From the NCBI GenBank assembly GCA_047495785.1, contig JBLDXI010000020.1:310001-374000 (forward strand): a stretch of DNA of 64,000 bases, written 5' to 3'. The notes beneath the pieces are model-generated. The model ran no database searches and had not been told where the DNA came from. It saw only the letters and a list, made by a program, of their open reading frames with translations. A program made the position numbers and the translations under genes. The first letter of the stretch is position 1, and the number at the start of each line of letters is the position of its first letter. This DNA comes from Lepidodermella squamata. Its lineage: Eukaryota; Animalia; Gastrotricha. Shown piece by piece: positions 15,612-57,682 of this stretch.

Positions 15612-18600
15612 CTATGAATGCCAGCAGAGACTATAAATTATTATTAGAACGAGAGTAGAGTGCTTCTCACCGCGCCGTGTGGCGGATGTGCGTAACGGCA
15701 CCACTGAGCATCTCTTGACATGAACGAGCCAAAGTCTCGGCCAGGGCGCTCTCCGTGCCGAGAATCGCCGCGTTGTGCAGCATGAGGTCGACGTTGGGTG
15801 ACTCTGAAGGCAGACCGTTCGCAAAGGCGATTTGCTGCGACGCATCGGTAGCGAGGCGCCGCGACAGCTCTAGGCAAGACCTGACAGCCACGTCCAGGTC
15901 TTCGATCAACAACCGGAACGCCGAGATCAACCGCCGCACCGCGTCCGATGGCCCGCCGCTGCTGCTCGCCGAACTCGAGCCGTCACCGCTGCCGCCGCGA
16001 GGTTGCGCCCCGGCAGTCGGGTTCGCGCCCGATGACATATTGGCTTCGAACTTCAAAGAAGTCCAGTCAGTACTATTCGGATTAGACAACGTTATAGCGA
16101 CATCGTGCGCCGAAAGCACCGTGAAACAGCGAATCAGCGAGGCATCGCGAGGTAAGCCGAGTAGAGACCGCGCTGTTGTGAACGAATTCGCCGCTCTTTC
16201 GTGGATTCCTCGCGAGTCGGCGAGTATAGCTGCCGATGATCGAATCATCTCATCCGCCTCCCGCATTCCGGTTATCCGCAATTTCCCAGCTAGGATTTGT
16301 TGGTTCGACGACGTTGAACCAGCAGCGACCCGACCAGCTGGTTGCGGCCGGCGGGGTTGTGGCGGCTGCGTGATGAATAGGTCAAGAGGCACCGGAGGTG
16401 TTGAAATTCCGACACGAACCAGCAGCCAGCCGGAAGGAATTCGCTTGCCCTCGGCCGAGAAAAGCGGCAGAGACCGATAGCCGCGTCGAAGCGCAGATAC
16501 CGGCAGCGCTGTGTGAGCGATGAAGTCATCGCCGATGAACTCGTCGTCGAGAATTGCGAATCTCAGCACAGCCAGTTGCGGCAGTCGGACTGAGAACTCG
16601 AACTTGTCGCCTGAGAAAACAGGTCCGAACGAATCTCCTCGCTGCGTCCGCGTTCGACCCCGCGCCGTGTCCAATGGCACGGAATGCACCTCGACGACCA
16701 CGTAAGGATCGACCGAATCCGCCTTGACAGCGTCGGAGCGGCTCGGTCGTGGCAAGTTATGAGCAGCTAGAACTTCGATGTTCAGAACGTGCGGCGCACA
16801 GCCAGGGTACAAGTCGAAAGCGAGGCGATCGACGCCGATCGGTAGCAGTGAATTGACGACAGGCGGGCGTTTCATGTAGCCGACGCTCGCCCACGTTTCT
16901 TTCCGAGCGCCTTCGGGCGATGCACCGGGGTCGGCAAAAAGCGCCGACGCCACCTGGCGAATGAGCGAGGTCGGGCGGGCTGGCCCGGCGACGATCTGGC
17001 ACCCGGTCAGCCAGTAGTGGAAGGGCACGACGGTGTGGTGGTGCGTTGAATTCGCTGATAAGGCCGAATCGATTGGCGAAGTCGGCGGCGAGGTCACTGA
17101 ACCGCCCTGGCACTGGCTGGTATCTAAGGCCAGACGGCTGCTAGCCGCCATCAGCGCAGGCGAGTCAAGCAGTGTGACGCGGATCAGGCTGTTCTGAGCA
17201 GCGGCTGCAATGGTGCCCGACGAACAGACACACTGGCGGAAGGAGGCGAAATCGGGGCCACACGAGTCGATGAGCGCGAGTGGGATGGGCGCGGCGCCGT
17301 TATTGGTGACGCCGCCGAGACTGCGGCCGTTGCCGCCACCAGCCGGCGTGCAGAAAATGAACTGGTAGGAGATCAGCTCGGCGAGATCGGCGACGAGCGA
17401 GCGCGGCGATGCACCGAGGTGCGGTGCGGCCGAAACCACGTCGCTCGAGTCGGCGTTGTCGGAAGTGAAGACAACGCGACCTTCGAGCTCGGCCAGGGTC
17501 GGCATACTGGTCACGACTTGCGGGCCGGTGCCATTCTCAGACGATTTGGCTGACGAGTTCGCAGTCCCCGGCCGTATTACCGTGATAAGCGAGCTGAAGG
17601 CGGCACGGATCTGGGACGCCGCGCGGCGCTGAGCCTCGGGCGAGCAGAAGGCAGAGACGTGTACGATAAGGGGGTACTTGGAGCGGCTGAAGGCATGACG
17701 CGCGATGGCGTTTAGCGCCGACTGCAGAGGCGCGCGTCCCGACGCAGCGTGGCACACGCACACGTCGTTGCCGCTGTAGTCGTGCAGGCACAGCTCGACG
17801 TACTTGCAGCCCGATCGCAGAACTGAAACGTAGTGCTCGATCGGGTCGAGGCCGCAATCGGAAGATCCAAAACTAGAGCCAAGAAAAATAAATCGTCCGA
17901 GAAAAAGATATTACTTGAAGCATTACGTACCATCGACTAAATGCGAACACAAAATAGTTTGTGAAAGGTTCGTTCCCAAAGTCTGGCGATAGGTTCGATG
18001 AAGACTGGGTCTTCGCAAAGGCAGATCCGTCGTCTGACAGAAGGTAATTCTGCAGACCCTCACAGCCGAGCATGTTCGATGCCTTTGCCTGCGAGTTAGG
18101 TTCAAACCGGTCAATGATGCTGTGAGCCAAAGCGTCAGCAGGACATGGTTCCTATTATTAACAGGCATAGTAAAAAATGTAATTGCCACAAGATCGCGAG
18201 TCACTTACGCCTTGCTCACACTCCAAGAATCGCTGGATGTCATCGATAGCCATGTACTCACCACCACCAATAGACGACAAGTTGACGAGTAGAAAGTGAA
18301 CTTCTTGCCAAATCGCAACTTCGTCCACGATTTGCACAAACTCCGTGAAAGATATTTCTGACCGACCGTGAAGCAACTCCTGCCATCAAATAATCAATAA
18401 GTATATATAAATCAAGTCAACTAGGGCGTCAAACCTTCAGCCGAAGCTCAGCGAATAACATAGACGATGCCGGATTAATTTGCTGAATGAGTGAAAGAAC
18501 TTGGTCACGCGCGATTGTGGTCATCCGCTGCAACGCCCCGGCCCCATTCGAGTCCCCATCACTCGCATCGGCGCGAATCGTGGCCTCGCTGCTGTAAGGT

Positions 18601-45497: not shown

Positions 45498-46723
45498 CAG
45501 GATCAGGATCAGGATTTACGATTTCTCCTCGCCCTGACGGACTCAAGCTTTCACCATAAGGCGGAGCTTGTGAGAAAATCGCGAGCTTACGCTCTAGGAA
45601 AGTTTGAACTGGTTTAATAACTACATAATTGAAATCCCTACCCCTGGTACTCCAGTTATTGCTGACTGTTTCTCCAGGGCCCAGGCATTAGTGCCCAGGT
45701 GGCTTTTCCACTCACTCAGCGAAGCCTACAAACGCCGTCGTAGCAAGAAAGCTACCAAAAGACTAGTTTGGAGGAATATTTACAAGAGTAGAGATAATTT
45801 ACAAGAGGTAATTCACGGAGTCAAAATATAAGATAATGTAATGACGGAGCTATAAAGAAAATAAAGTATATTACATTTGGTTGAGTATAGGCTTTGAAAA
45901 ATATAAATAGAAATTTGGAAAAACTCATTTAGTTCGGCACGTAGTTGTAGACGAAGGCGGCTTTGGAGTACGGATTGAACGCGACCTGCGGCTGCAGAGA
46001 GGCGTTGAGTTCCTTCTTCTTTCGCTCGCTATTCGCCTTGATGATGGCGTCGTGTTTGGCCTGTTCGCGTAGGAATTCGAGCGTGGCTTGCCGGCACGCC
46101 TTTGTGGTAGCAGACAGCCTGATCTTCGCTGGCAGCTGGTTCCACCACTGGATGGCCTTGGTTGGGAACGAGCGCTGGCCTGTGGCGAGCTTGCACGATG
46201 GCTTGACGTACTTCCCGGTGGCGGCGCCTCGAGTGTTGTGGTCATGCTGTTGGTTCATCGGCTTGACTAGCGACGAGAGTGCCTCGGGGGTCTCAGGATC
46301 CCTGCTGCACTTCCACATGGTTGTAGCCAGGTGGACCAGTCGTTTGCCTTGCAGATTCACCCATCGCAATCGCACGAGAACTTCATCGGCGGGCACGTCA
46401 GGACTGACGTCGAGAACGGCACGAACGGCTTTGTTTTGCGCGTGTTGAAGTCGATCCAGCTGGGTCTTGCAGCCCTGATCGATGACGGCGTCGCAGTAGT
46501 TGAACTTCGACCCGATGATGCCGTCGTACATCATTGTTCGAGTCTTCAGGTCGGTGTGCCGAGCCGCTTTACGTAGTGCGTAGGTACCACTTCTTGCGGC
46601 TTTGATCAGATGATCGACGTGCTTTTCCATGGTGAGCTTTGAGTCCAGATAGACTCCCAGGATCTTCACGTGGTCAAGTGGCGGCAGATCGACTTCACCG
46701 AATCGAATTTCTGGAGCAGAAGC
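45498..46723 (-). mobile_element. 5'-truncated CR1/L2-like LINE (element A) with 3' UTR and (ATCCTG)3 tail
   Basis: C-terminal part of ORF2, ~430-nt 3' UTR and tandem hexamer tail at 45515-45498; the last 200 nt recur at 53923-54122. Confidence 0.85.
45929..46723 (-). pseudogene. C-terminal fragment of LINE ORF2 (RT thumb and downstream region), no catalytic YADD
   Basis: HVKILGVYLDSKLTMEKHV, SKFNYCDAV, LQHAQNKAVRAVL, LRWVNLQGKR, HDHNTRGA, QRSFPTKAIQWWNQLPAKIR are CR1/L2-clade ORF2 C-terminal motifs. Confidence 0.85.
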
Positions 46724-46889
46724 CTGTTGGTTAGACAAAAACATATAATAACAACTTTTTGAAAACTTAGCGCCACAAAATCATTGTACGTTGTAGCACC
46801 ATTTTGATTTATTTGATGAAGAGATAAATATAACAAAATATACTCAAATGTCACGGTTGCGCGCGCCAACAGATTCCGCCAACGCAAGC

Positions 46890-47063
46890 GCTGTTTGATT
46901 ATTCTGGAGGAGAAGTTAGCGTAGAAAGCAATGTGCCCAGAAAGCAGCTGCTTTCCATGCAGTAAGCCGTAATGAGCGTATGCGTGGAAAACACTGCTTT
47001 CCAGGCAATTTGCCTGCTACGCACTAGCACTGCGCTCTAGGCACTGCTTTCCAAGCAAATTTC
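46890..47063 (+). repeat. MULE left TIR
   Basis: Reverse complement of 54418-54591 with few mismatches; contains repeated CTGCTTTCCA motifs and palindrome GAAAGCAGCTGCTTTC. Confidence 0.93.
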
Positions 47064-47561
47064 TCCCGGAGTGCTTAGAATGCATTCTTGGCTCATTTCG
47101 CGTAGTTTTGCAGGTTGAGAATTACTGTTTCTGATGTTTGGGACACTTTTCTGTTATTTTGTCTAATTTTCGTACTCACACGCTTTACTCTGTACTATCT
47201 GGGCGATAGTATTTTTGAATTATGCTATTAAATTATTATTCGAGTACATAATAGTTTGATAAGGGTGTCACGTGTGTATCCGGTACAAGGGCGGGTCGCG
47301 TGGCGATTCCTTTTGCATCAGCTGTGCAGCACTTTTGTGGCGCGACAGTCTTGTGGTGCGTAAGCCATGCCATAAAACACAATTAGATAAGGATAACTCT
47401 CTTAAGTATACCTGGAACTACGCTGTCTTGTATTCCCTGTATGAGAACTGTTTGCCAAGTTTGAACCGCAACTCTGTACATTGTTAACGTTTATTCTCTT
47501 TTAATCCATAGGCTTTCAGTTATTCGCTTTTGTAAGCTTATTATTGAGTTGTTTTCTATCA

Positions 47562-50500
47562 ATGAGTCTCTTCGACGAGATTCGTCGTATGAACAAGAAA
47601 GTCATAAAAAAGGATGACATTATCCTCGCTATGCCGCCAGCTTTTCATGGCGATTTGCTTCTGTTTGCTGCGGACTATTTGAAAAAATTGGAGAAGGTAT
47701 GCATTGGTACATTTTACTTCCAGTCATATCTGTTTGCTATCTTATCTTATAGGAGGAAAAACAGATTTATTCCCACCCTAAGGACCACCTGTATTTCGAC
47801 GAAGGAGAGGGGGGTGCTTTGAGAGCCGTTTCTTTCCGGTTAGTTGTTGATTTTGCGGTTAATTTAATTGCAAACATTTTTCTTCATCCCTAGCTGTGCT
47901 GCGGGTTTCTCCGATGAGGCGACGATTAACCCCCGAACCCAGCTAGGTTGCAAAGCCTTCAAGCGCTTCGTCTTGGTGAAGACAGCGCAGGAGTATTTTG
48001 TGGCTATTCGTTCCGGTCCTCAGCCTCACAATCATGGCGACAACCTGAATAACCAGGAAAGTGTGATTCGTCACCTGCGCCACGATCAGGAAACCCTCAG
48101 GGCAGTAGAAGATCTGGTATCTACGAAGCTCTCAGCCACTGAGATTTCGAAGAGATCCTGTGAAGCTGCTGTCCTGGAGAAGAACTCCATTGCCGATCGT
48201 CGCAAATGCCTTGATCAACTCGACGTATACTCGTTCAAAAGACGAATTATGTCGTTGAAAGGTGCGCGGTAAGTGATTTTTATTTACCATGGTATCAATC
48301 AGGGACTACTTGTATGTTACAATTGATAATAGACTGGACAAAGTTGAATTCCACAGTGTGGAAAAGCTGGTGGAAGCCGACAGGGGGAAGCAGGTTCAAG
48401 AAGTTATTCATTACACTCCCGGCGATTCTCCGTCCGGTTTTGTCTTGGCAATGATGACGCCTCTCCAGCAAGCTCTCGTTGCCAACAATGAGATTTACGA
48501 AACTGGATTTCTGGACGCGACTTTCAAGGGCGTAACAAAGCATAATTACGCTCTCTATGCCATCGCCGCCGTTCAGAAAGGAGTCGAAAAATCTTTGCCG
48601 CTTGCGTTTGCCATCTTGGAACATGACGATGAGGCCAGTTTACGCCTATTTCTCACAGCGCTTCGCGACAAATGCATCAGTCTTAATCCTGCGTTCAAGT
48701 TTAGGCATGCCTTATCTCACTATCTTTTCAGTCAAGAATTACTGGGGTATTTTTCAGGACGATTGTCATCGATAAAGACCAGAAGGAGATCTCGCTAATC
48801 AAAGAAATTTTTGATTGTTGCGTTGTCCTGTGCTACTTCCATCTGCTTCAGGTAATTGTTCGAATACTTAAATAGGATTTTTACAATGTGGCTGTGTTAT
48901 AGGCTGTAATTAGATGGCTTCATGGCGAAAAATCTGGTTGTTCCGGTCGCTCTGAGAAGGCCAAGGCGGAGCGTTGCGCTGTAATAGACCTGATAGAGAC
49001 CATTCGAGCGTCTGGCAACTACGAAGAAGTGCAGAAAAAGTGGCGAGAAGGCAGCCCGAATCTGTCGCCAAAAGTCCGCACGTATCTTTGGGAATTTTGG
49101 GTTCAGGAGAAATATGCTGTGTTGTGGTGTCGCTATGCGCTCAAAAATTACCATCTTGACCAGGCTACCAATAACATTATTGAGGTGTAATTACTGATTT
49201 CGACTGAAACGACTTTATTATGTTTTCTTTTTTTTATTACGGTAGAACTTCTGGTTTTGCCTGAAATACACTTTCTTGAAGGTTTGTCCAGCTAGCTATA
49301 CATCATTTTATTCATTTCTGTTATCTTGTATCATTTCAGGGTTCTTATAACCGCCGGATAGACGATTTGGTATTTTTGCTTTCTAACGAGGTCATGTCAT
49401 ATTACGCGCATCTAATGAACCTCGATGCCCACGGTCGAAAAATCTTGAAGCTGAAGCATAAGCCGGAGCAGTTGGCTACGAAGCAAGCTGACAACGACCG
49501 TTTCTGCTCTACGGTCGTCTGGGGCGATGACCTCGTTACCGTACCGTCGTTCACGCCCAACGAATTCGACATCAAGTACGAGGTGAACCCGGCAGAGCAA
49601 CGGTGTTCATGTGTCTACAGTATTCACGGAAATATATGCAAGCATTTGCATTTCGTGCGCAAGTTGAATCCGGATAAGGTAAGACTTGGTTATTTTCTTC
49701 TATAAAATAATGTTAATTTTGCGTGCGGTTCATTCAGATATCCGTTTACCGTGATCGTCTTACGAAGTCAATTGTCGACGAAGGCCTCTGCGACAAGTTG
49801 GGCGATGAGCTACGAGTGATGAGCCCAATTAGCCATCACGTCAGCCTGGTCGACCTGAAGACGATGAGATGCGACTGCATGGCGTCGAGTTATGCGCCGG
49901 ATAAGGAACTTTGTTGTTGTGTTATGGCCGCTCGCCAGCTATTCCCAGGTATATTATTAAACAGTTATTCGATTTGCTGTTTTGTCATTTCATATGATTC
50001 AATTTTCAGTTGAAGCTGAGGCTGCTGACCAACTGCTAGTTCAAGCTCGTTCCACTGCGCCTAGTGTGAAAGATGCGGTTGCGGCATTTTCAAGCAACAA
50101 GGTTGCTCCGGCAACCAAAATGCCTGCAACGACACGCAACGCTCATTTCTCGAAAACCGGAATAAAGCGCTCTGCTCCTATCGACCCGGACGAGCCAAGC
50201 TCAAGCGGCGATCATCTTGCTGATCACTGCACGAGTGCTGACCCCCTTGCTGATCATAGAGTGAAGAAATTCAGAAGCTCTAAAAGAGGAAGACAAACGC
50301 ACAACGTGATGGCGAATTTCAGACGCCAAAACTGTCCCTCTGATGTGCCTGCTGATGTTGCCGCGCGACTTGCGTCAACGTCAAATGCACCGGAACCGGC
50401 ATGCACTCCCACCTCGCGCCTCGTTGGCCTGAGTCTACCCGGTCTGCGTATTCCTGGCCCGCTGCTCGCTGGAACCGGTTTGCGTATTCCACGCCCGCCG

Positions 50501-50662
50501 CTCCCTGGAACCGGTCTGCGTATTCCTGGCCCGCTGCTCGCTGGAACCGGTTTGCGTATTCCACGCCCGCCGCTCCCTGGTGCTGGAATAGCGGTTGTTA
50601 GCCCTTCCGGTGTGGTGATTTTGCGCCCTCCGGGCGCGGCTAATACAAATAATATCAACTAA
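47562..50662 (+). CDS. MULE transposase, ~860 aa, 10 exons
   Basis: Exons 47562-47696, 47753-47838, 47894-48268, 48333-48698/48704, 48758-48851, 48903-49184, 49246-49281, 49340-49678, 49738-49948, 50010-50662 splice to one open frame. N-terminal C...C...HNH Zn module, D (FLDATF), D (VIDKD), CYFH, E (TNNIIE), NRRIDDLV, SWIM finger CSC-x7-CKH. Confidence 0.88.
50439..50580 (+). repeat. Coding minisatellite: four 36-bp units (two 72-bp dimers)
   Basis: Encodes alternating GLRIPGPLLAGT / GLRIPRPPLPGT in the transposase C-terminus. Confidence 0.9.
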
Positions 50663-51448
50663 ACTTTCGCTATTAGCTCTCCGCTTAATCCTTTGTGTTT
50701 GCTCAACATCCGGCTTCTTGCATCCGCATGTGTGCGCATTGTGCGCGATGAGTGCCACTTCTTACACACTCATTAGCGATGACCGCGCGGAATTCATACT
50801 CATAGTTGACTCGAGTATAATTGAAACGATGAATGCCTCTTTCAACTTCGACACTGTTTTTCGGTTGTAAAATGTCTTTCTATTTTGCCGCATCGTGCGT
50901 GGAAATTGTTTACTATTGTGAACAAATTGCGGCTCGAGCCCGGTTATGGTGATTAATAGATCAATAATTAAATTGTGATAACAGATAATTGCAATTCAGG
51001 CGTAATAAATTGCGGTTTTCTTGCATCCTTGTGTGACATGTCTCATACCTTACACACGTGATATGCAATTTCGTTTTTTTTTAAAGTGAAAATGATACCA
51101 AGCTTGATGAATAAACATTCCGTTTTCAGTACACTTGTGGTTTTTTTACATAAATGACCCGATGTTCATGTTTATGGAAATATCACAGCTGACGTTTCAC
51201 GCTACCCAAGTGCGTCATCCACTTGAGAGCGCGCTTCTTTTAGCGGCGGGACCAGCTCCTTATGTCGACTGGTTAATAGCAAGGCGTACAGCCTCTCATG
51301 TCAGGTGTGGGTAGCTTACCGACAAAGCGGCCTAACAGGTGTCGAAACCATGCCGATTTCAGAGTCCAAAACACGAAAACAAATTCGTATCGCATTTATT
51401 TTGCAATTTTGTAATTCACATTAAAAGTCATCATCATTATTCATCCTT

Positions 51449-53206
51449 ATGGCTGACCGCAGGAAGGACGTTGAATGTCCCGACCTTGTCGACTCTCTTC
51501 TTCTTTTTCTGTCGCCGAACAATGGCCTGCTACGCACTTGGTCAGGACTTGCCAAACTGACATTCAAGTCGAACGCGACCACCAAGGCTGTGATTCGAGC
51601 GGCCTATTCAGGCGACTCACGTTACTACGTGCTGCTGAACGCAATCAGGTTGGCTGAGAAGAAAACTGCAAAGGAGCGCGACGACGGCTATTTCACCACC
51701 GTTACCCGAGAAGACGCTGTTAAGCCGATCAAGGTGATTGAAAGCGCTCTGAGGCTTCGCGTTCCGCTCATCAAACGCATCGATCTTCAACTGCCCAGCT
51801 TTTGCGATGATCCGCGCATGTTCAACCTGACCGCAGAACAAACAAGGTTAGTAATATAGAAGTATACGTTTTTACAATTTTTAGGCTATTTTTGGCTATT
51901 TTTGGCGTATGTACAGCGTCTCCCAAAAATTGCGAAAATTTTTTTAGTTTAGGTTGGTTTTAGATGGTAACTGGCTCGGTAATTTTCGGTATTTTACCCG
52001 GTTGGGCCAAATTCCTCCGGACCTTTTTAATCCCGTAAACCCGTTAGTGGCATACTTAATTATATTCTCGTGATTTTTGGATATTTTTATAAAATTTCTG
52101 GCCGTAAGATGGGACTTCGTCTCTCATTTATGAGTTTCTGAAGCCTTTTCCGTGCATTTTCTCCGCTTGCTGTACATATAAACTGTAGTTCCTCTTTAGC
52201 GCAAAACGAAACCTCAGAAATGTTAATAAGGTCCCTCCAATTAAGATAATTTGCCTCGTTATATTTTCAACAGAGAGTTCCTGAAATCTTTCAAGGTTCT
52301 GATCAGTCGCGGCCTACCGTCTGACGAAGTGACCAAGGGGGCTTCTAGCGTAGCGTTGCTCGTCGCCATCGATTTCATCGACAGGTCTATTGCCAGCATG
52401 TTGAACGAGCCAACGGCCATGTTGAACGAGTCCGTCGCGGTGTACGACAAGCTGGCGACCGAATTCATCGCGAAAAACAAACATCTTCTTCGCCCGAATT
52501 TGCCAATCATTCAGGGCAAGGTCAAAGTGAAGCCGCAGGCCATCGAAGAGGCTATGGCGAGCCCAGATGAAGAAATCGAATTCGATCGCCCAGGCTCAAG
52601 CGCGTCGAGCATCTCGCTTTCTTCGTTTTCCGAATCGAGCCATTCCGTTTTAGACCTGGAAGACGATGTCGATGTACTGAACCAACTGGCCGGCAATTCC
52701 GCTGACCAAACGATCGTCGCTGCTCCTCCTAATGAACGACCAGACAGCAGCGTCAGTAATGCCTCGCGAAAACGCCAACTGTCATCAGCCACGACCTCTT
52801 CAACCTTGCCGTCTTCGTCTTCTTCTACACCAATTGACAACGAGCCAGTCATACCTGAAACTGCAAGCGACGCTTCAGAATCTAAAAAGGTAATATCCAT
52901 CAACTGTGTTGCAGCTTTTCCTAAATGATTACCTTACTTACCTAGATTCGAGTGGACGAGACGAAGCTGTGGCGGCACATCTTCACGCCGAATCCACAAG
53001 ACCATCGCTTTCTCGACTTGACGCACCAATTCCCGCTCAATTGGCCGGCCGAAAATGTGCAGCTGCCACCCGAAGTCCAGGCTTTCAGCGACATGGTCTC
53101 GAATGGCGCGCAACCTGAACACGCAGCAATGCTCTGTTATAGAGGTTCTGAATTCTCTTGTGAAATCATTCACCATACAATTGATGCAATTGAAATAACT
53201 GTTTGA
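51449..53206 (+). CDS. Second MULE-borne gene, 424 aa, unknown function
   Basis: Exons 51449-51846, 52274-52889, 52946-53206 join in frame through GT-AG introns; helical N-terminal part, Ser/acidic low-complexity middle with RKR, compact C-terminal domain. No family recognised. Confidence 0.75.
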
Positions 53207-53922
53207 ACAACTAATCGATTTTCATTCGCTATTTCTTGTTTTCGACAGTTTCCGCTATCCTGCTTGGTTAATTAATTGATAGCTTGTGTTACGATGAATT
53301 TGTAGTTGAGACAGCATTGCAGTTTGCTAATTGACAGGCTTGAGCGCTCAATTTTATAATAAAACGTTTCCAATCAGCATATTTCTTTTCCGTCGCTCTA
53401 TAAAGGAGCCCTAAAAAGGCAGAATTCGTAAGTAACACGAAACATTTAGACAGACAGAAAGACTGTGAGAGGTAACAGAAAAGTTGAACTCAACTTTTTT
53501 GATGATTTTACGATGGGCGTCTAATCGAGACGAATCACACATAGGCGGTGAGGCGCCCCGACCGTTTTTAATTGCTAAACGTCGCGAGACAAATTGTAAA
53601 ATAAATCAGTATATCAGGGTGTCAGTTTACACCAGCTGTCAGATGACGTGGGACACCTCGATGTTTGCACGAGTGCGGTGACATTACTTCAATTAACCAG
53701 CCCGAGATGAGCTGGTCTCTTGTCTGTTAGTTGCATGTCGCAACTGTTTTTTTATTCCAGTGTAAAAAAATTCCTAATCCTGCCTTCTATGATAGGATAA
53801 AGGTCGGAGAAAGTAGAAAATTTCAATTATTTCAATCTTGGATGGGATAAAAATCAAGATTAAAAAAAATTGCTACCCTGTTGCATTCGAACTTCCATAG
53901 AACGCGCACCGATGTGCGCGAC

Positions 53923-54122
53923 CAGGATCAGGATCAGGAATTACGATTTCTCCTCGCCCTGACGGACTCAAGCTTTCGCCATACGGCGGAGCTGGTGAGA
54001 CAATTGCGACCTCACGCTCCAGGAAAGTTTGGTCTGGTTTACTGACTACTTAATGAATTTCCTACCCCTGGTACCCCAGTTACTGCTGACTGTTTCTCCA
54101 GGGCCAAGGCATTAGTGCCCAG
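53923..54122 (-). mobile_element. 200-bp 3'-terminal LINE fragment inside the MULE
   Basis: About 90% identical by manual alignment to 45498-45698, including the ATCCTG tail. Confidence 0.85.
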
Positions 54123-54417
54123 TAAATGTTCACTTGTTTCACGGTGGCAAATGGCAAAAATACGCGTTCCTCCTGAAGTAATGCGTTACTCAAAAAAAAG
54201 TAAAGTAATTCGCTATTTTGGCTTAAGTAACGCCTAAACACCTAATAATCACTTGATGGATGACCTAACGGCTAAGCATGGGGTCAAGGTCTAAAGAAAA
54301 TAACAGTCATAATGAAGCGTTTGAAAAACCTCACAAATGGTGTTTCAATAATATAACTATATTTTGGAATGTAAACCAACAGAATGGCGGTAAAAACGCT
54401 TAGAAAGCAGCGCTGGC

Positions 54418-54591
54418 GAAATTTGCTTGGAAAGCAGTGCCCGGAGAGCAAAGTGTGTGCGTAGCAGGCAAATTGCCTGGAAAGCAGTGTTTTCCACGCA
54501 TACGCTCATTACGGCTTACTGCATGGAAAGCAGCTGCTTTCTGGGCGCACTGCTTTCCATGCTAACTTCTCCTCCAGAATAATCAAACGGC
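54418..54591 (-). repeat. MULE right TIR
   Basis: Inverted copy of 46890-47063, followed directly by the TSD ACGCAAGC. Confidence 0.93.
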
Positions 54592-55140
54592 ACGCAAGCA
54601 GTAGGTTTCTTTGCCAGTTGGCTAAGTGAGTGGGCCGCGAATAAACGGGTGAACGACGACCGTCTTACGTCTTACCGTTATCATCCGTTATTCGTTATCG
54701 TGTCTTTTAATTACTGTTGTCCAAGGTGATTCCATTCTACATCCCTGGATAGTGGATAGCTGATTTGACTGACATCAAACATCTTGGGCACGAGATATAC
54801 CGAGCTTTTGCTCGCCATCGCTTTTTTGCTCTGAACTGCGAGTTTTTTAATCAATAGAAACTCGCATGACACTTTCTATACAAAATTGTCTAGCCTAAAG
54901 CCACAGAGAACAATTAAATTGAGTTACACCTCACAATTGATTTAGTGCCTGGCGCCTAGTACCTATGCTAGTCACTTCAAACGTCACCCCTCGACGAAAT
55001 GCAACAAATAATCACGACATGTCTCTATTTCCCTTCCGTTTTTGGTTCACTGCCACGACGAGTTTACACGATATGTACTCGATTTATTTCATTAAGCGTT
55101 TTTATTTTAATCATGGTTTTGCAATAGATTTGCCTGAGAC

Positions 55141-56244
55141 ATGGCATTTTGTTATCCCAATTATGATCCTCGAAGGCAAATTGGACTGTTGCTGAAGAAT
55201 TTTCAAGTCAACCGTGAAATCTCGTTTCAGTCGTTATACGAAGGAATTGTGTACTCTCTCGCTATCGATAAAGCAGAGAGTAAATACTTGCTCTGTGGAA
55301 CATCGAGCGGAGTCATTGCCATCTATGACCCCTCACTTGTTCATCAAAGAAATGAATATCGACCCATAGCTCACATTGGCAAGTCAAGCCAGTTTTGCCC
55401 CTCTAATGTCAGGACTGTCTCCTGGTACCCTATCCACACTGGTTTGTTCGCCAGTAGCGGAGAGGACGGCAATCTCACTATTTGGGATACAAATCTCATG
55501 CGGCCACTTGATAAATACAAAATCGGGTGTGGAATATATTCTCATGCTTTCGGGCTTGCGCGATCTACTTCAACTCTTATTGCCGTGGCTTCTGAACAAT
55601 TCGCAATCCGAATAGTTGATTACAGAATTGGGTCGTCTTCTCATACTCTTGATGCGCATGAATCGGCTCAAGTCAGCGTGGCTTGGTCTCCCTCTGATGA
55701 TCGATTATTGTGCTCAGGAGGAAAGAACGGGCGGGCGCTGTTTTGGGACATGCGGATGTGCAAATCCCCATTGCTATCTCTTGGAAAGCCAAGTCGCTCT
55801 CTTCCATCAAGCACAAAAACTCATTGGACTCAGCTCAAAGCTCACAATGGCGCGGTCCTGAGTTTGCACATGGTTGACGATAACGTGACCATGTTAACGA
55901 TCGGTAGAGACAGAGTTCTTCGGTCTTGGGATGTTAGAACTGGAAAGTGGTTGAACGATCTAGCGGTGTTGAATAATAACATGTTACCTTGTCTTCATAA
56001 AATCGAAGTAACATCCGTATCCGCTAATTCCTCGCCCCCGGTCGCAATTGTACCAGACGGAAAGTCGGTTCGCGTGGTCTCCTTGTTGAACGGCATGACT
56101 TATCGTCGGCTGAATGCGCATTTTGATCAAATTGCCTCTGTTACCGTTATTGCAGACGGCACTTATCGAGTTATATCGGCGGGACATGACCAGTCAATTT
56201 TGATGTGGTCATATCAACCCTGTCAAATGAATGCAGACGAATAG
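55141..56244 (+). CDS. ERCC8: DNA excision repair protein ERCC-8 / CSA (WD40), single exon
   Basis: SLAIDKAESKYLLCG, VSWYPIHTGLFASSGEDGNLTIWDTN, GSSSHTLDAH..VAWSP, KAHNGAV match CSA WD repeats. Confidence 0.85.
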   Translation: MAFCYPNYDPRRQIGLLLKNFQVNREISFQSLYEGIVYSLAIDKAESKYLLCGTSSGVIAIYDPSLVHQRNEYRPIAHIGKSSQFCPSNVRTVSWYPIHTGLFASSGEDGNLTIWDTNLMRPLDKYKIGCGIYSHAFGLARSTSTLIAVASEQFAIRIVDYRIGSSSHTLDAHESAQVSVAWSPSDDRLLCSGGKNGRALFWDMRMCKSPLLSLGKPSRSLPSSTKTHWTQLKAHNGAVLSLHMVDDNVTMLTIGRDRVLRSWDVRTGKWLNDLAVLNNNMLPCLHKIEVTSVSANSSPPVAIVPDGKSVRVVSLLNGMTYRRLNAHFDQIASVTVIADGTYRVISAGHDQSILMWSYQPCQMNADE

Positions 56245-56474
56245 TAAAATGCTGTGGTATATTTTTGAAAATAAGCACATGTGATCTCAAACTCTTGAAT
56301 TTCCGATCGCGATGTTCATTTTTCATCATCGCAGACATGCGGCAGTCGATTTCACGCAAAATTAGCGCGGCTTCTTGAGATTAAATTGCTGCATGTAGAG
56401 ATATTCTTGCGTTTCATTTCATATACTGTTTACTGCGTAGGATCGATTATTCTAATATTTTGCGCTACTCAGCT

Positions 56475-57682
56475 ATGTCGTCAACTGAGAATCCCGTGCG
56501 CGTGGCAGTTTGTGGATTTGGACGAGCGGGGCGTATTCACAGCTCAAACTTGCTGCGTAATGCGGCGGCAGAATTAGTCGCCATAGTGGAAGTTCAGTCA
56601 GCTCAATCTGCGGCGTCTGATTACCTGCGCCAGCTGGGCGTGAAAAATCCGGATGCGTTGCTTTACACGCCAGAGCAGCTTCAGGATTTGTTGAGCGGAG
56701 ACAAAGTGGATGCCCTAATAGTGACTACTCCGACTCCAGACCATGAGCCATTCGTAAAGGGTAAGATTTTTTACACTCACTCTCGTTCTCAGCGTTATAT
56801 ATTTGCTCAGAATAGCGACATTTTTGTTATTGTATGTTTTACGTTTGTTTAGCTGGTCTCTCGGCGGCGAAAGCGGTGTTTTGCGAAAAGCCGCTCGCGC
56901 CCACACTTGAGGCAACTGCTGAGATGTACAAACTTGCAGAAAAACAAGGCTGTCCACTTTTCTGCAGCATGAACCGTCGATTTGATCCGACGATTAATGC
57001 ATTACGATCCACACTGAACACCGGCGTTCTAGGCAAGCCGCTGGTTCTGAAAACCGTCGCTCGTGATCACCCTGTACCGCCACTACACTACATTAAGACA
57101 TCAGGTGGCATGGTTCACGATTGTGGCATTCATGATTTAGATATTGCGTGTTGGTTGGTTGGCAGCTGGCCCGAAGAAGTTTATACGATGGCTTTTTGCC
57201 ACGATGCTGGAATTGCATCGATCGGCGACGTCGATACTGTCGCGATTTCGATGAAGTTTTCGAAGCCTACGCCATGCATAGCTACCTTGGACTTATCGCG
57301 CCATGGTAGTTACGGATATGACCAGCGTGTTGAGGTTCACTGCGAGAAAGGCATGCTTGAAAGCCAGGCGCAGCGCCAAAACGGCTTGGCGATCACGACT
57401 TCGCCCGGGTCGAATGGCCACCACGCGGGTACGATGGTCGCGCCGATTCTTTCGTCCTTTCCGACGCGTTACGCTGAGAGCTACAAAGCTGCTGTTGCCC
57501 ACTTCCTTTCGCTGACTAAAAATTACTTGCTGCGCCGTGAAGGAGCGAAAGTCATGCCCGAGCCGGAAATTGTTCCCGGCTGTGAAGTATTGAAGTCCAC
57601 GCTACTTGCCGACGCTGCCGAGCGTTCATTGAAAACAGGCAAGCCCGTTCGAATCAACTACGAGAAGATGTCGTTTGAGTGA
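56475..57682 (+). CDS. myo-inositol 2-dehydrogenase-like Gfo/Idh/MocA oxidoreductase (IolG-like), 2 exons
   Basis: Exons 56475-56760 and 56853-57682; GFGRAG Rossmann motif, TPTPDH, VFCEKP, NRRFDP, ARDHP, SGGMVHDCGIHDLD, YGYDQRVEV. Confidence 0.88.

Follow-up and report, generated by a model that had tools for sequence, protein, structure and literature searches.

A spliced second gene of a recently mobile Mutator-like transposon in a gastrotrich encodes a protein without recognisable family

The stretch of Lepidodermella squamata DNA that we analyzed (64,000 nt, hereafter the window) contains an autonomous-looking, recently mobile Mutator-like transposon, and the locus at 51449-53206 (+) is its second gene. 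We are highly confident that this locus is a real spliced protein-coding gene owned by the element rather than by the host, and there is every indication that selection at the level of the element was already maintaining it before two element lineages diverged, and has done so since. As far as sequence, profile and fold searches reach, its product is an orphan, with no family, solved structure or homologue found for any exon, and the protein most likely serves the transposon.

Reading of the sequence gave three exons separated by GT..AG introns and a product of 424 aa (Table 1). The exons sum to 1275 nt, or 424 codons and a stop, and agree with the mechanically generated list of open reading frames. 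A paralogue in a sister element on contig C17 keeps both introns at identical positions and in identical phases, along with three open frames, and judged by this comparison the gene model is more than chance. An earlier note on this DNA had proposed a three-exon gene that splices in frame, lies on the strand of the transposase, is carried by a MULE and has short tandem repeats in intron 1. Each of these points held: the frames are open with canonical splice sites, the MULE and SWIM reading frames share the (+) strand, the carrier has TIRs, 8-bp TSDs, precise ends and a transposase upstream, and the repeats are present at 51877-51906 (period 10 nt, 2.9 copies). At 51963-52179, intron 1 also includes an internal fragment, in reverse orientation, of a MITE family of ~380 bp; the family has the ends ACAGCGTGTCCC...GGGACACGCTGT and 40 or more copies in the genome, at ~80% identity. 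Some 100 nt of this fragment can still be aligned in the intron of the C17 paralogue, and the MITE insertion is thus older than the split of the two element lineages.

Table 1. Features of the element and of its accessory gene, in window coordinates.
Feature	Position	Strand	Description
Left TSD	46882-46889	.	ACGCAAGC, 8 bp; same bases flank both element ends
Left TIR	46890-47108	+	219 nt; 3-4 copies of sub-repeat CACTGCTTTCCA; copy identity stops exactly at 46890
Transposase gene	47562-50662	+	Multi-exon; approximate coordinates; on exon pieces, weak MULE-domain match 48289-48798 and SWIM 49367-49705
Spacer	50663-51448	+	Transposase poly(A) signals at 51004 and 51110; conserved blocks
Accessory exon 1	51449-51846	+	132 codons + 2 nt; ATG start; donor AAG|GTTAGT; ends 2 bases into codon
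Accessory intron 1	51847-52273	+	GT..AG; acceptor TTTTCAACAG
Accessory exon 2	52274-52889	+	Donor AAG|GTAATA, phase 0
Accessory intron 2	52890-52945	+	GT..AG, phase 0; acceptor ACCTAG; position kept in C17 paralogue
Accessory exon 3	52946-53206	+	86 codons + TGA; small acidic C-terminal region
AATAAA	53358-53363	+	Candidate poly(A) signal of accessory gene
Right TIR	54373-54591	-	219 nt; copy identity stops exactly at 54591
Right TSD	54592-54599	.	ACGCAAGC

The carrier is a Mutator-like element of 7,702 bp (46890-54591), in which the accessory gene follows the transposase. Its TIR arms are 85% complementary, and each contains the sub-repeat three to four times; this sub-repeat is common to both lineages. 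Long TIRs with sub-repeats are thus present, and the 8-bp TSD falls within the 8-11 bp range of MULEs (PMC6446971). Single exon pieces of the transposase gave weak matches to PF10551, at E=0.0025 with 18.7 bits (cut-off 27.6), and to SWIM, at E=0.032. The transposase ends in a Pro-rich 36-nt minisatellite (50439-50580), and the gene is collinear with its C17 counterpart, with conservation of the encoded protein. To the left of the element lies a 271-aa open reading frame (45929-46744, -) for which a Pfam scan returned no match, and to its right, at 55141-57682 (+), lie a WD40 gene that looks intronless and a spliced gene for a GFO/IDH/MocA oxidoreductase.

Searched at the DNA level, the 121-Mb genome yielded five full copies of the element at five sites, each with a different 8-bp TSD. 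Two pairs of copies are 100% identical over all 7,702 bp. One consists of the window element and C20:166060-173761, which lie 190 kb apart on the same contig; the other consists of C24:3697559-3705316 and C24:3948916-3956673, which are 251 kb apart on the same contig. The members of both pairs occupy sites with different flanks and different TSDs. Given the complete identity within each pair, the element family must have moved very recently, apparently to linked sites and with the donor retained. The fifth full copy differs from one of the identical pairs by 19 mismatches. Short derivatives are almost absent from a TIR search of the genome, which found one such pair: at C20:1067092-1067805, inverted TIR-like arms with 76% identity to the family TIR stand ~0.7 kb apart and form a candidate short non-autonomous derivative. 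More distant MULE families of the genome lie on contigs C15, C19, C32, C1 and C74.

The accessory gene follows the element throughout the genome. Six-frame searches of the 121-Mb assembly found six intact copies, and 6/6 are inside MULEs at the same position. When the whole 121-Mb genome was searched in six frames with each exon and with an exon-1 profile, and all candidates were scored, no copy of the gene was found outside elements. Apart from the intact copies, the matches were a few decayed pieces on contigs C42, C7, C55 and C10, some of which abut transposase or TIR fragments. At C10:299069-299625 (-) (L052 6070-6626), a 5′ piece of the transposase that is 85% identical to the family at the amino acid level is joined directly to part of accessory exon 2, there with an identity of only 45-53%; this locus is an internally deleted derivative and possibly a mosaic. 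A host gene that could be the parent in a Pack-MULE capture was not found in the whole genome, which argues against capture of that type, and we rejected capture of a gene still present in the genome on the grounds that there is no host copy and that all intact copies are in MULEs. These results agree with the earlier note, which had judged the gene not to be a Pack-MULE capture, had proposed to test whether homologues always sit beside MULE transposases (true in this genome of all six intact copies), and had regarded a single-copy host gene outside transposons as evidence against its reading.

To estimate selection we compared the gene with its paralogue in the sister element at C17:3841545-3848790. 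This element has 213-bp arms that are 96% identical to each other, an altered left tip and no visible TSD. Over the full length it aligns collinearly with the window element, with ~67% nucleotide identity in the transposase, and its second gene is the same and occupies the corresponding position. The C17 gene encodes 422 aa; its ATG, both donors and both acceptors are at positions homologous to those of the window copy, and its frames are open. Counting exon by exon and then summing, we obtained a pN of 0.24 and a saturated pS of 0.70 for all accessory exons, and a pN of 0.21 and a pS of 0.72 for the transposase. Exon 1 is the best-conserved part of the gene, with 79% amino acid identity, pN 0.117, pS 0.58 and dN/dS ~0.11. 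For exon 2 (59% identity, pN 0.273) pS was saturated at 0.76 and dN/dS was not computable, and exon 3 (42% identity) had pN 0.366, pS 0.73 and dN/dS ~0.18. The overall dN/dS is thus about 0.1-0.2, a value that comes from two lineages only and from saturated synonymous sites; a dN/dS comparison across copies had been suggested as a check on the gene, and on these terms the ratios are far from 1. The introns are 52-62% identical to C17 and the 3′ noncoding DNA is 46% identical. Judging from these comparisons, the accessory gene is under purifying selection and is constrained about as strongly as the transposase, with exon 1 under stronger constraint than the transposase on average. Outside the sister element, 143 nt of its left flank recur with 100% identity ~13 kb downstream (L044 3401-3543; merged C17 coordinate 16372-16514), and this recurrence may be due to a local duplication or to a further repeat.

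Within the young family, the exons contain one difference in 1275 nt, a synonymous change at 53020, compared with 4 differences in 483 nt of intron and a divergence of ~3% in 3′ noncoding DNA (Fisher p=0.02 and 3.5e-11, respectively). We give this within-family conservation of the exons less weight, because in these copies the interior of the element as a whole has diverged less than the ends. The low divergence is partly common to introns and spacer, so that recent exchange between copies may have contributed to it besides selection. Between the lineages, the segment 50190-51089, which covers the transposase end, the minisatellite and ~430 nt past the stop, is 78-93% identical to C17 as opposed to 55-70% for the rest of the transposase, and pS is just 0.25 in 50231-50440. 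This pattern suggests recent exchange between the lineages or a strongly constrained cis region.

The earlier note had described the gene as unrecognised and as unlike any host gene known to its author, and searches exon by exon at the level of sequence, profile and fold likewise gave no family. Family scans of the three exons of both paralogues against Pfam, NCBIfam and PHROGs gave nothing credible, and no recognised DNA-binding domain appeared in the accessory gene in these scans. Sequence and profile searches of the PDB returned noise only; the best match, Crov539, covered 24 residues at E=0.002 with no passing stretch and was rejected as noise. Word-index protein searches with exons 1-3 separately found no relatives, scans of metagenome and viral contigs found none either, ESM Atlas held no usable match for exons 1 and 2, and Foldseek with the exon-2 model returned no match below E=2. 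Nor does the gene resemble the transposase or any other sequence in the window.

The largest search, a HMMER run of an exon-1 profile against 1.84 billion representatives with no length limit, returned two NACHT/WD40-type proteins only. These matched query residues 27-61 only, through 6-10 near-identical repeats in the target, and a single unit scored ~30 bits. We estimate that such a single-unit score is expected by chance many times in a library of 1.84 billion. The Pfam WD40 model was silent on the accessory exons at E up to 10, and a low-confidence structure model is helical at residues 27-61. We therefore attribute the WD40 likeness to chance, given that it involves a single unit whose significance comes from a sum over repeats. 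The same searches bear on the second genes of plant MULEs. The exon-1 profile found no plant or TE protein among the 1.84 billion representatives and the word searches with exons 1-3 found nothing, so that homology to MURB was not detected in these database searches. Homology to VANC was not found in these searches either, of which the one with exon 1 alone had no length limit.

Several features of the protein are shared by the paralogues. Most of exon 1 is invariant between them, as are KNKHLLRPNLP.IQGKVKVKPQ in the first ~95 residues of exon 2 (with its basic KVKVKPQ), the acidic and Ser-rich patch PDE..F.RPGSSASS.SLSS, and SRKR.LS, which resembles a nuclear localisation signal. Exon 3 conserves W..IFTP, DLT, WP.E, LP.E and F.DMVS.G..PE.AA. 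Residues 96-205 of exon 2 form a Ser/Thr-rich, acidic linker (32% S+T, net charge -12) that contains SRKRQ, just as the earlier note had read a Ser/acidic linker with a basic RKR. The helical N-domain proposed there fares less well: AlphaFold2 predicts helices from the exon-1 alignment at pLDDT 38, and from the exon-2 alignment (pLDDT 55 overall) it predicts helices in residues 1-95 (pLDDT 52-80) and disorder in the remainder. Helices are thus weakly supported in both parts, and at these predicted confidences the models of exons 1 and 2 are too poor to use.

The noncoding DNA around the gene fits a separate transcription unit. Upstream of the accessory ATG the spacer is 74% identical to C17, against 46-62% in other noncoding DNA, and blocks at 51303-51340 (with two CAGGTG motifs) and 51388-51402 (GTATCGCATTTATTT) are kept in both lineages. 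The conserved spacer is likely the promoter and 5′ UTR of the accessory gene. Taken together with poly(A) signals after both stops and an in-frame stop 8 codons before the conserved ATG, these blocks lead us to infer that the gene is transcribed separately. One could instead suppose that the exons are not a separate gene but belong to the transposase transcript, either as 3′ exons that are used alternatively or as a second cistron further down. They share the strand of the transposase and lie 786 nt beyond its stop, and a conserved acceptor-like site, TTCAG|AG, occurs ~85 nt before the ATG in both lineages. However, the transposase stop is followed by its own poly(A) signals, the upstream stop leaves no in-frame fusion, and the spacer has conserved blocks of its own; we consider a single transcript very improbable and the least likely of all the alternatives weighed here.

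We speculate that the separately transcribed gene encodes a nuclear cofactor that assists the transposase at the ends of the element and is comparable in function to MURB. This is our leading candidate for the function, and we hold it tentatively, at somewhat below even chances. Transcription would start at a promoter of the gene's own, within the conserved spacer that follows the transposase, and the protein would enter the nucleus through the conserved SRKR patch and help the transposase with assembly, reinsertion or donor retention, in a role analogous to that of maize MURB without being related to it. The helical, conserved N-terminal ~230 residues would carry the interaction, while regulation or tethering of the protein would fall to the Ser/acidic linker, which can be phosphorylated, and to the small acidic region at the C-terminus. 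Selection at the level of the element, however, is just as compatible with a role in regulation or anti-silencing. A factor for anti-silencing or counter-defence, like VANC in its working and unrelated to it, would shield element copies from host small-RNA or chromatin silencing. It would draw on the same element-level conservation as the helper and would suit a family that is currently active in two sublineages, and VANC sets the precedent of a MULE-borne anti-silencer (PMC5735166, PMC10398659, PMC6446971). Against it, the protein has no recognised DNA-binding domain, and a k-mer census of both elements found no array of short motifs in internal noncoding DNA, returning the TIR sub-repeat and the coding minisatellite only. 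Because VANC-style arrays are absent, we regard anti-silencing as less likely than a helper function, and as rather unlikely in itself.

The conservation at the level of the element could also reflect a self-regulator, that is, an inhibitor or dosage controller that damps or times transposition, holding copy number low and the host viable. The copy number is indeed very low for an active family, with five full copies and almost no short derivatives, however, low copy number has many other causes and nothing in the sequence points to inhibition, and we find this role improbable. We think it slightly more doubtful still that the gene is old cargo, captured from the host or from another organism before the lineages split and with a function unrelated to transposition. 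The literature often assumes a host origin for the extra ORFs of MULEs (PMC6446971), and residues 27-61 of exon 1 look like one WD40 repeat unit. That likeness amounts to ~30 bits per unit and reaches significance only as a sum over the 10 near-identical repeats in a single target. The genome has no paralogue outside elements, no relative came from the databases searched, and cargo of no benefit to the element would not hold a dN/dS near 0.15. The helper reading, for its part, can be set beside the second genes known from other MULEs.

MURB has ~207 aa, and its gene, mudrB, starts from the TIR opposite that of mudrA, so that the two are transcribed towards each other; the two genes of the element described here, by contrast, lie in tandem on one strand, in an animal host. 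The searches with exons 1 and 2 could reach MURB-sized proteins, yet no similarity was found. In Pack-MULEs, too, non-transposase coding sequence lies between MULE TIRs, however, these are non-autonomous and carry fragments of host genes that are still in the genome, whereas here the transposase is retained and the gene is complete, spliced, selected and without a host counterpart. The binding sites of VANC are arrays of a short motif, which are lacking from the internal noncoding DNA here, and no similarity to VANC was found. The VANC and VANB genes of Arabidopsis VANDAL21/Hiun resemble the accessory gene as extra, fast-evolving MULE ORFs that stand beside the transposase and serve the element, (PMC5735166, PMC10398659, PMC6446971), and VANC proteins are described as binding noncoding regions of their own elements (PMC5735166, PMC10398659). 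Lineage-specific and mutually unrelated second genes are known from MULEs as mudrB, vanB/vanC and mutB (PMC6446971). Of these, MURB of maize MuDR has a narrow lineage and no recognisable domain and is apparently required for integration (PMC6446971), and like the gene described here it is a lineage-restricted, domain-less second gene inside an autonomous Mutator element. Outside plants, two-ORF MULEs include Yarrowia Mutyl, which carries MutB, and elements of the Phantom clade and MULE-Co, and in the latter two the second ORFs have no described function or family (PMC6446971). The Phantom clade is listed with 8-10 bp TSDs, long TIRs, SWIM, one or two ORFs and a minisatellite after the transposase ORF (PMC6446971). 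In its traits our element resembles this survey entry, with its 8-bp TSD, 219-bp TIRs, SWIM and the minisatellite at 50439-50580. None of the second ORFs listed for these elements surfaced as a relative. On the sequence comparisons made here, the accessory gene appears to stand outside the MURB, VANC and MutB families and would be another independent lineage-restricted solution, in an animal and in an apparently active element.

To our knowledge, functional studies of the additional genes in Mutator elements are limited to maize, Arabidopsis and a yeast, and the proteins concerned are each lineage-specific and unrelated to the others. We also know of no anti-silencer and no non-catalytic transpososome subunit described for any animal MULE. 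Second ORFs of animal MULEs have been listed without a function (PMC6446971). It is a bold and rather unlikely possibility that the protein founds a family of its own, either of animal transposon factors that disarm host silencing or as an obligatory non-catalytic subunit of an animal Mutator transpososome. The compact genome of L. squamata combines an apparently active family, a diverged sister lineage and a second gene conserved as strongly as the transposase, and this combination makes a direct test of the need for a helper practical. The question it raises is whether an animal cut-and-paste transposon needs, or profits from, a helper protein, and whether such a protein targets the machinery of transposition or the defences of the host. 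Were the answer positive, the outcome would be a protein family that is new and whose role is defined.
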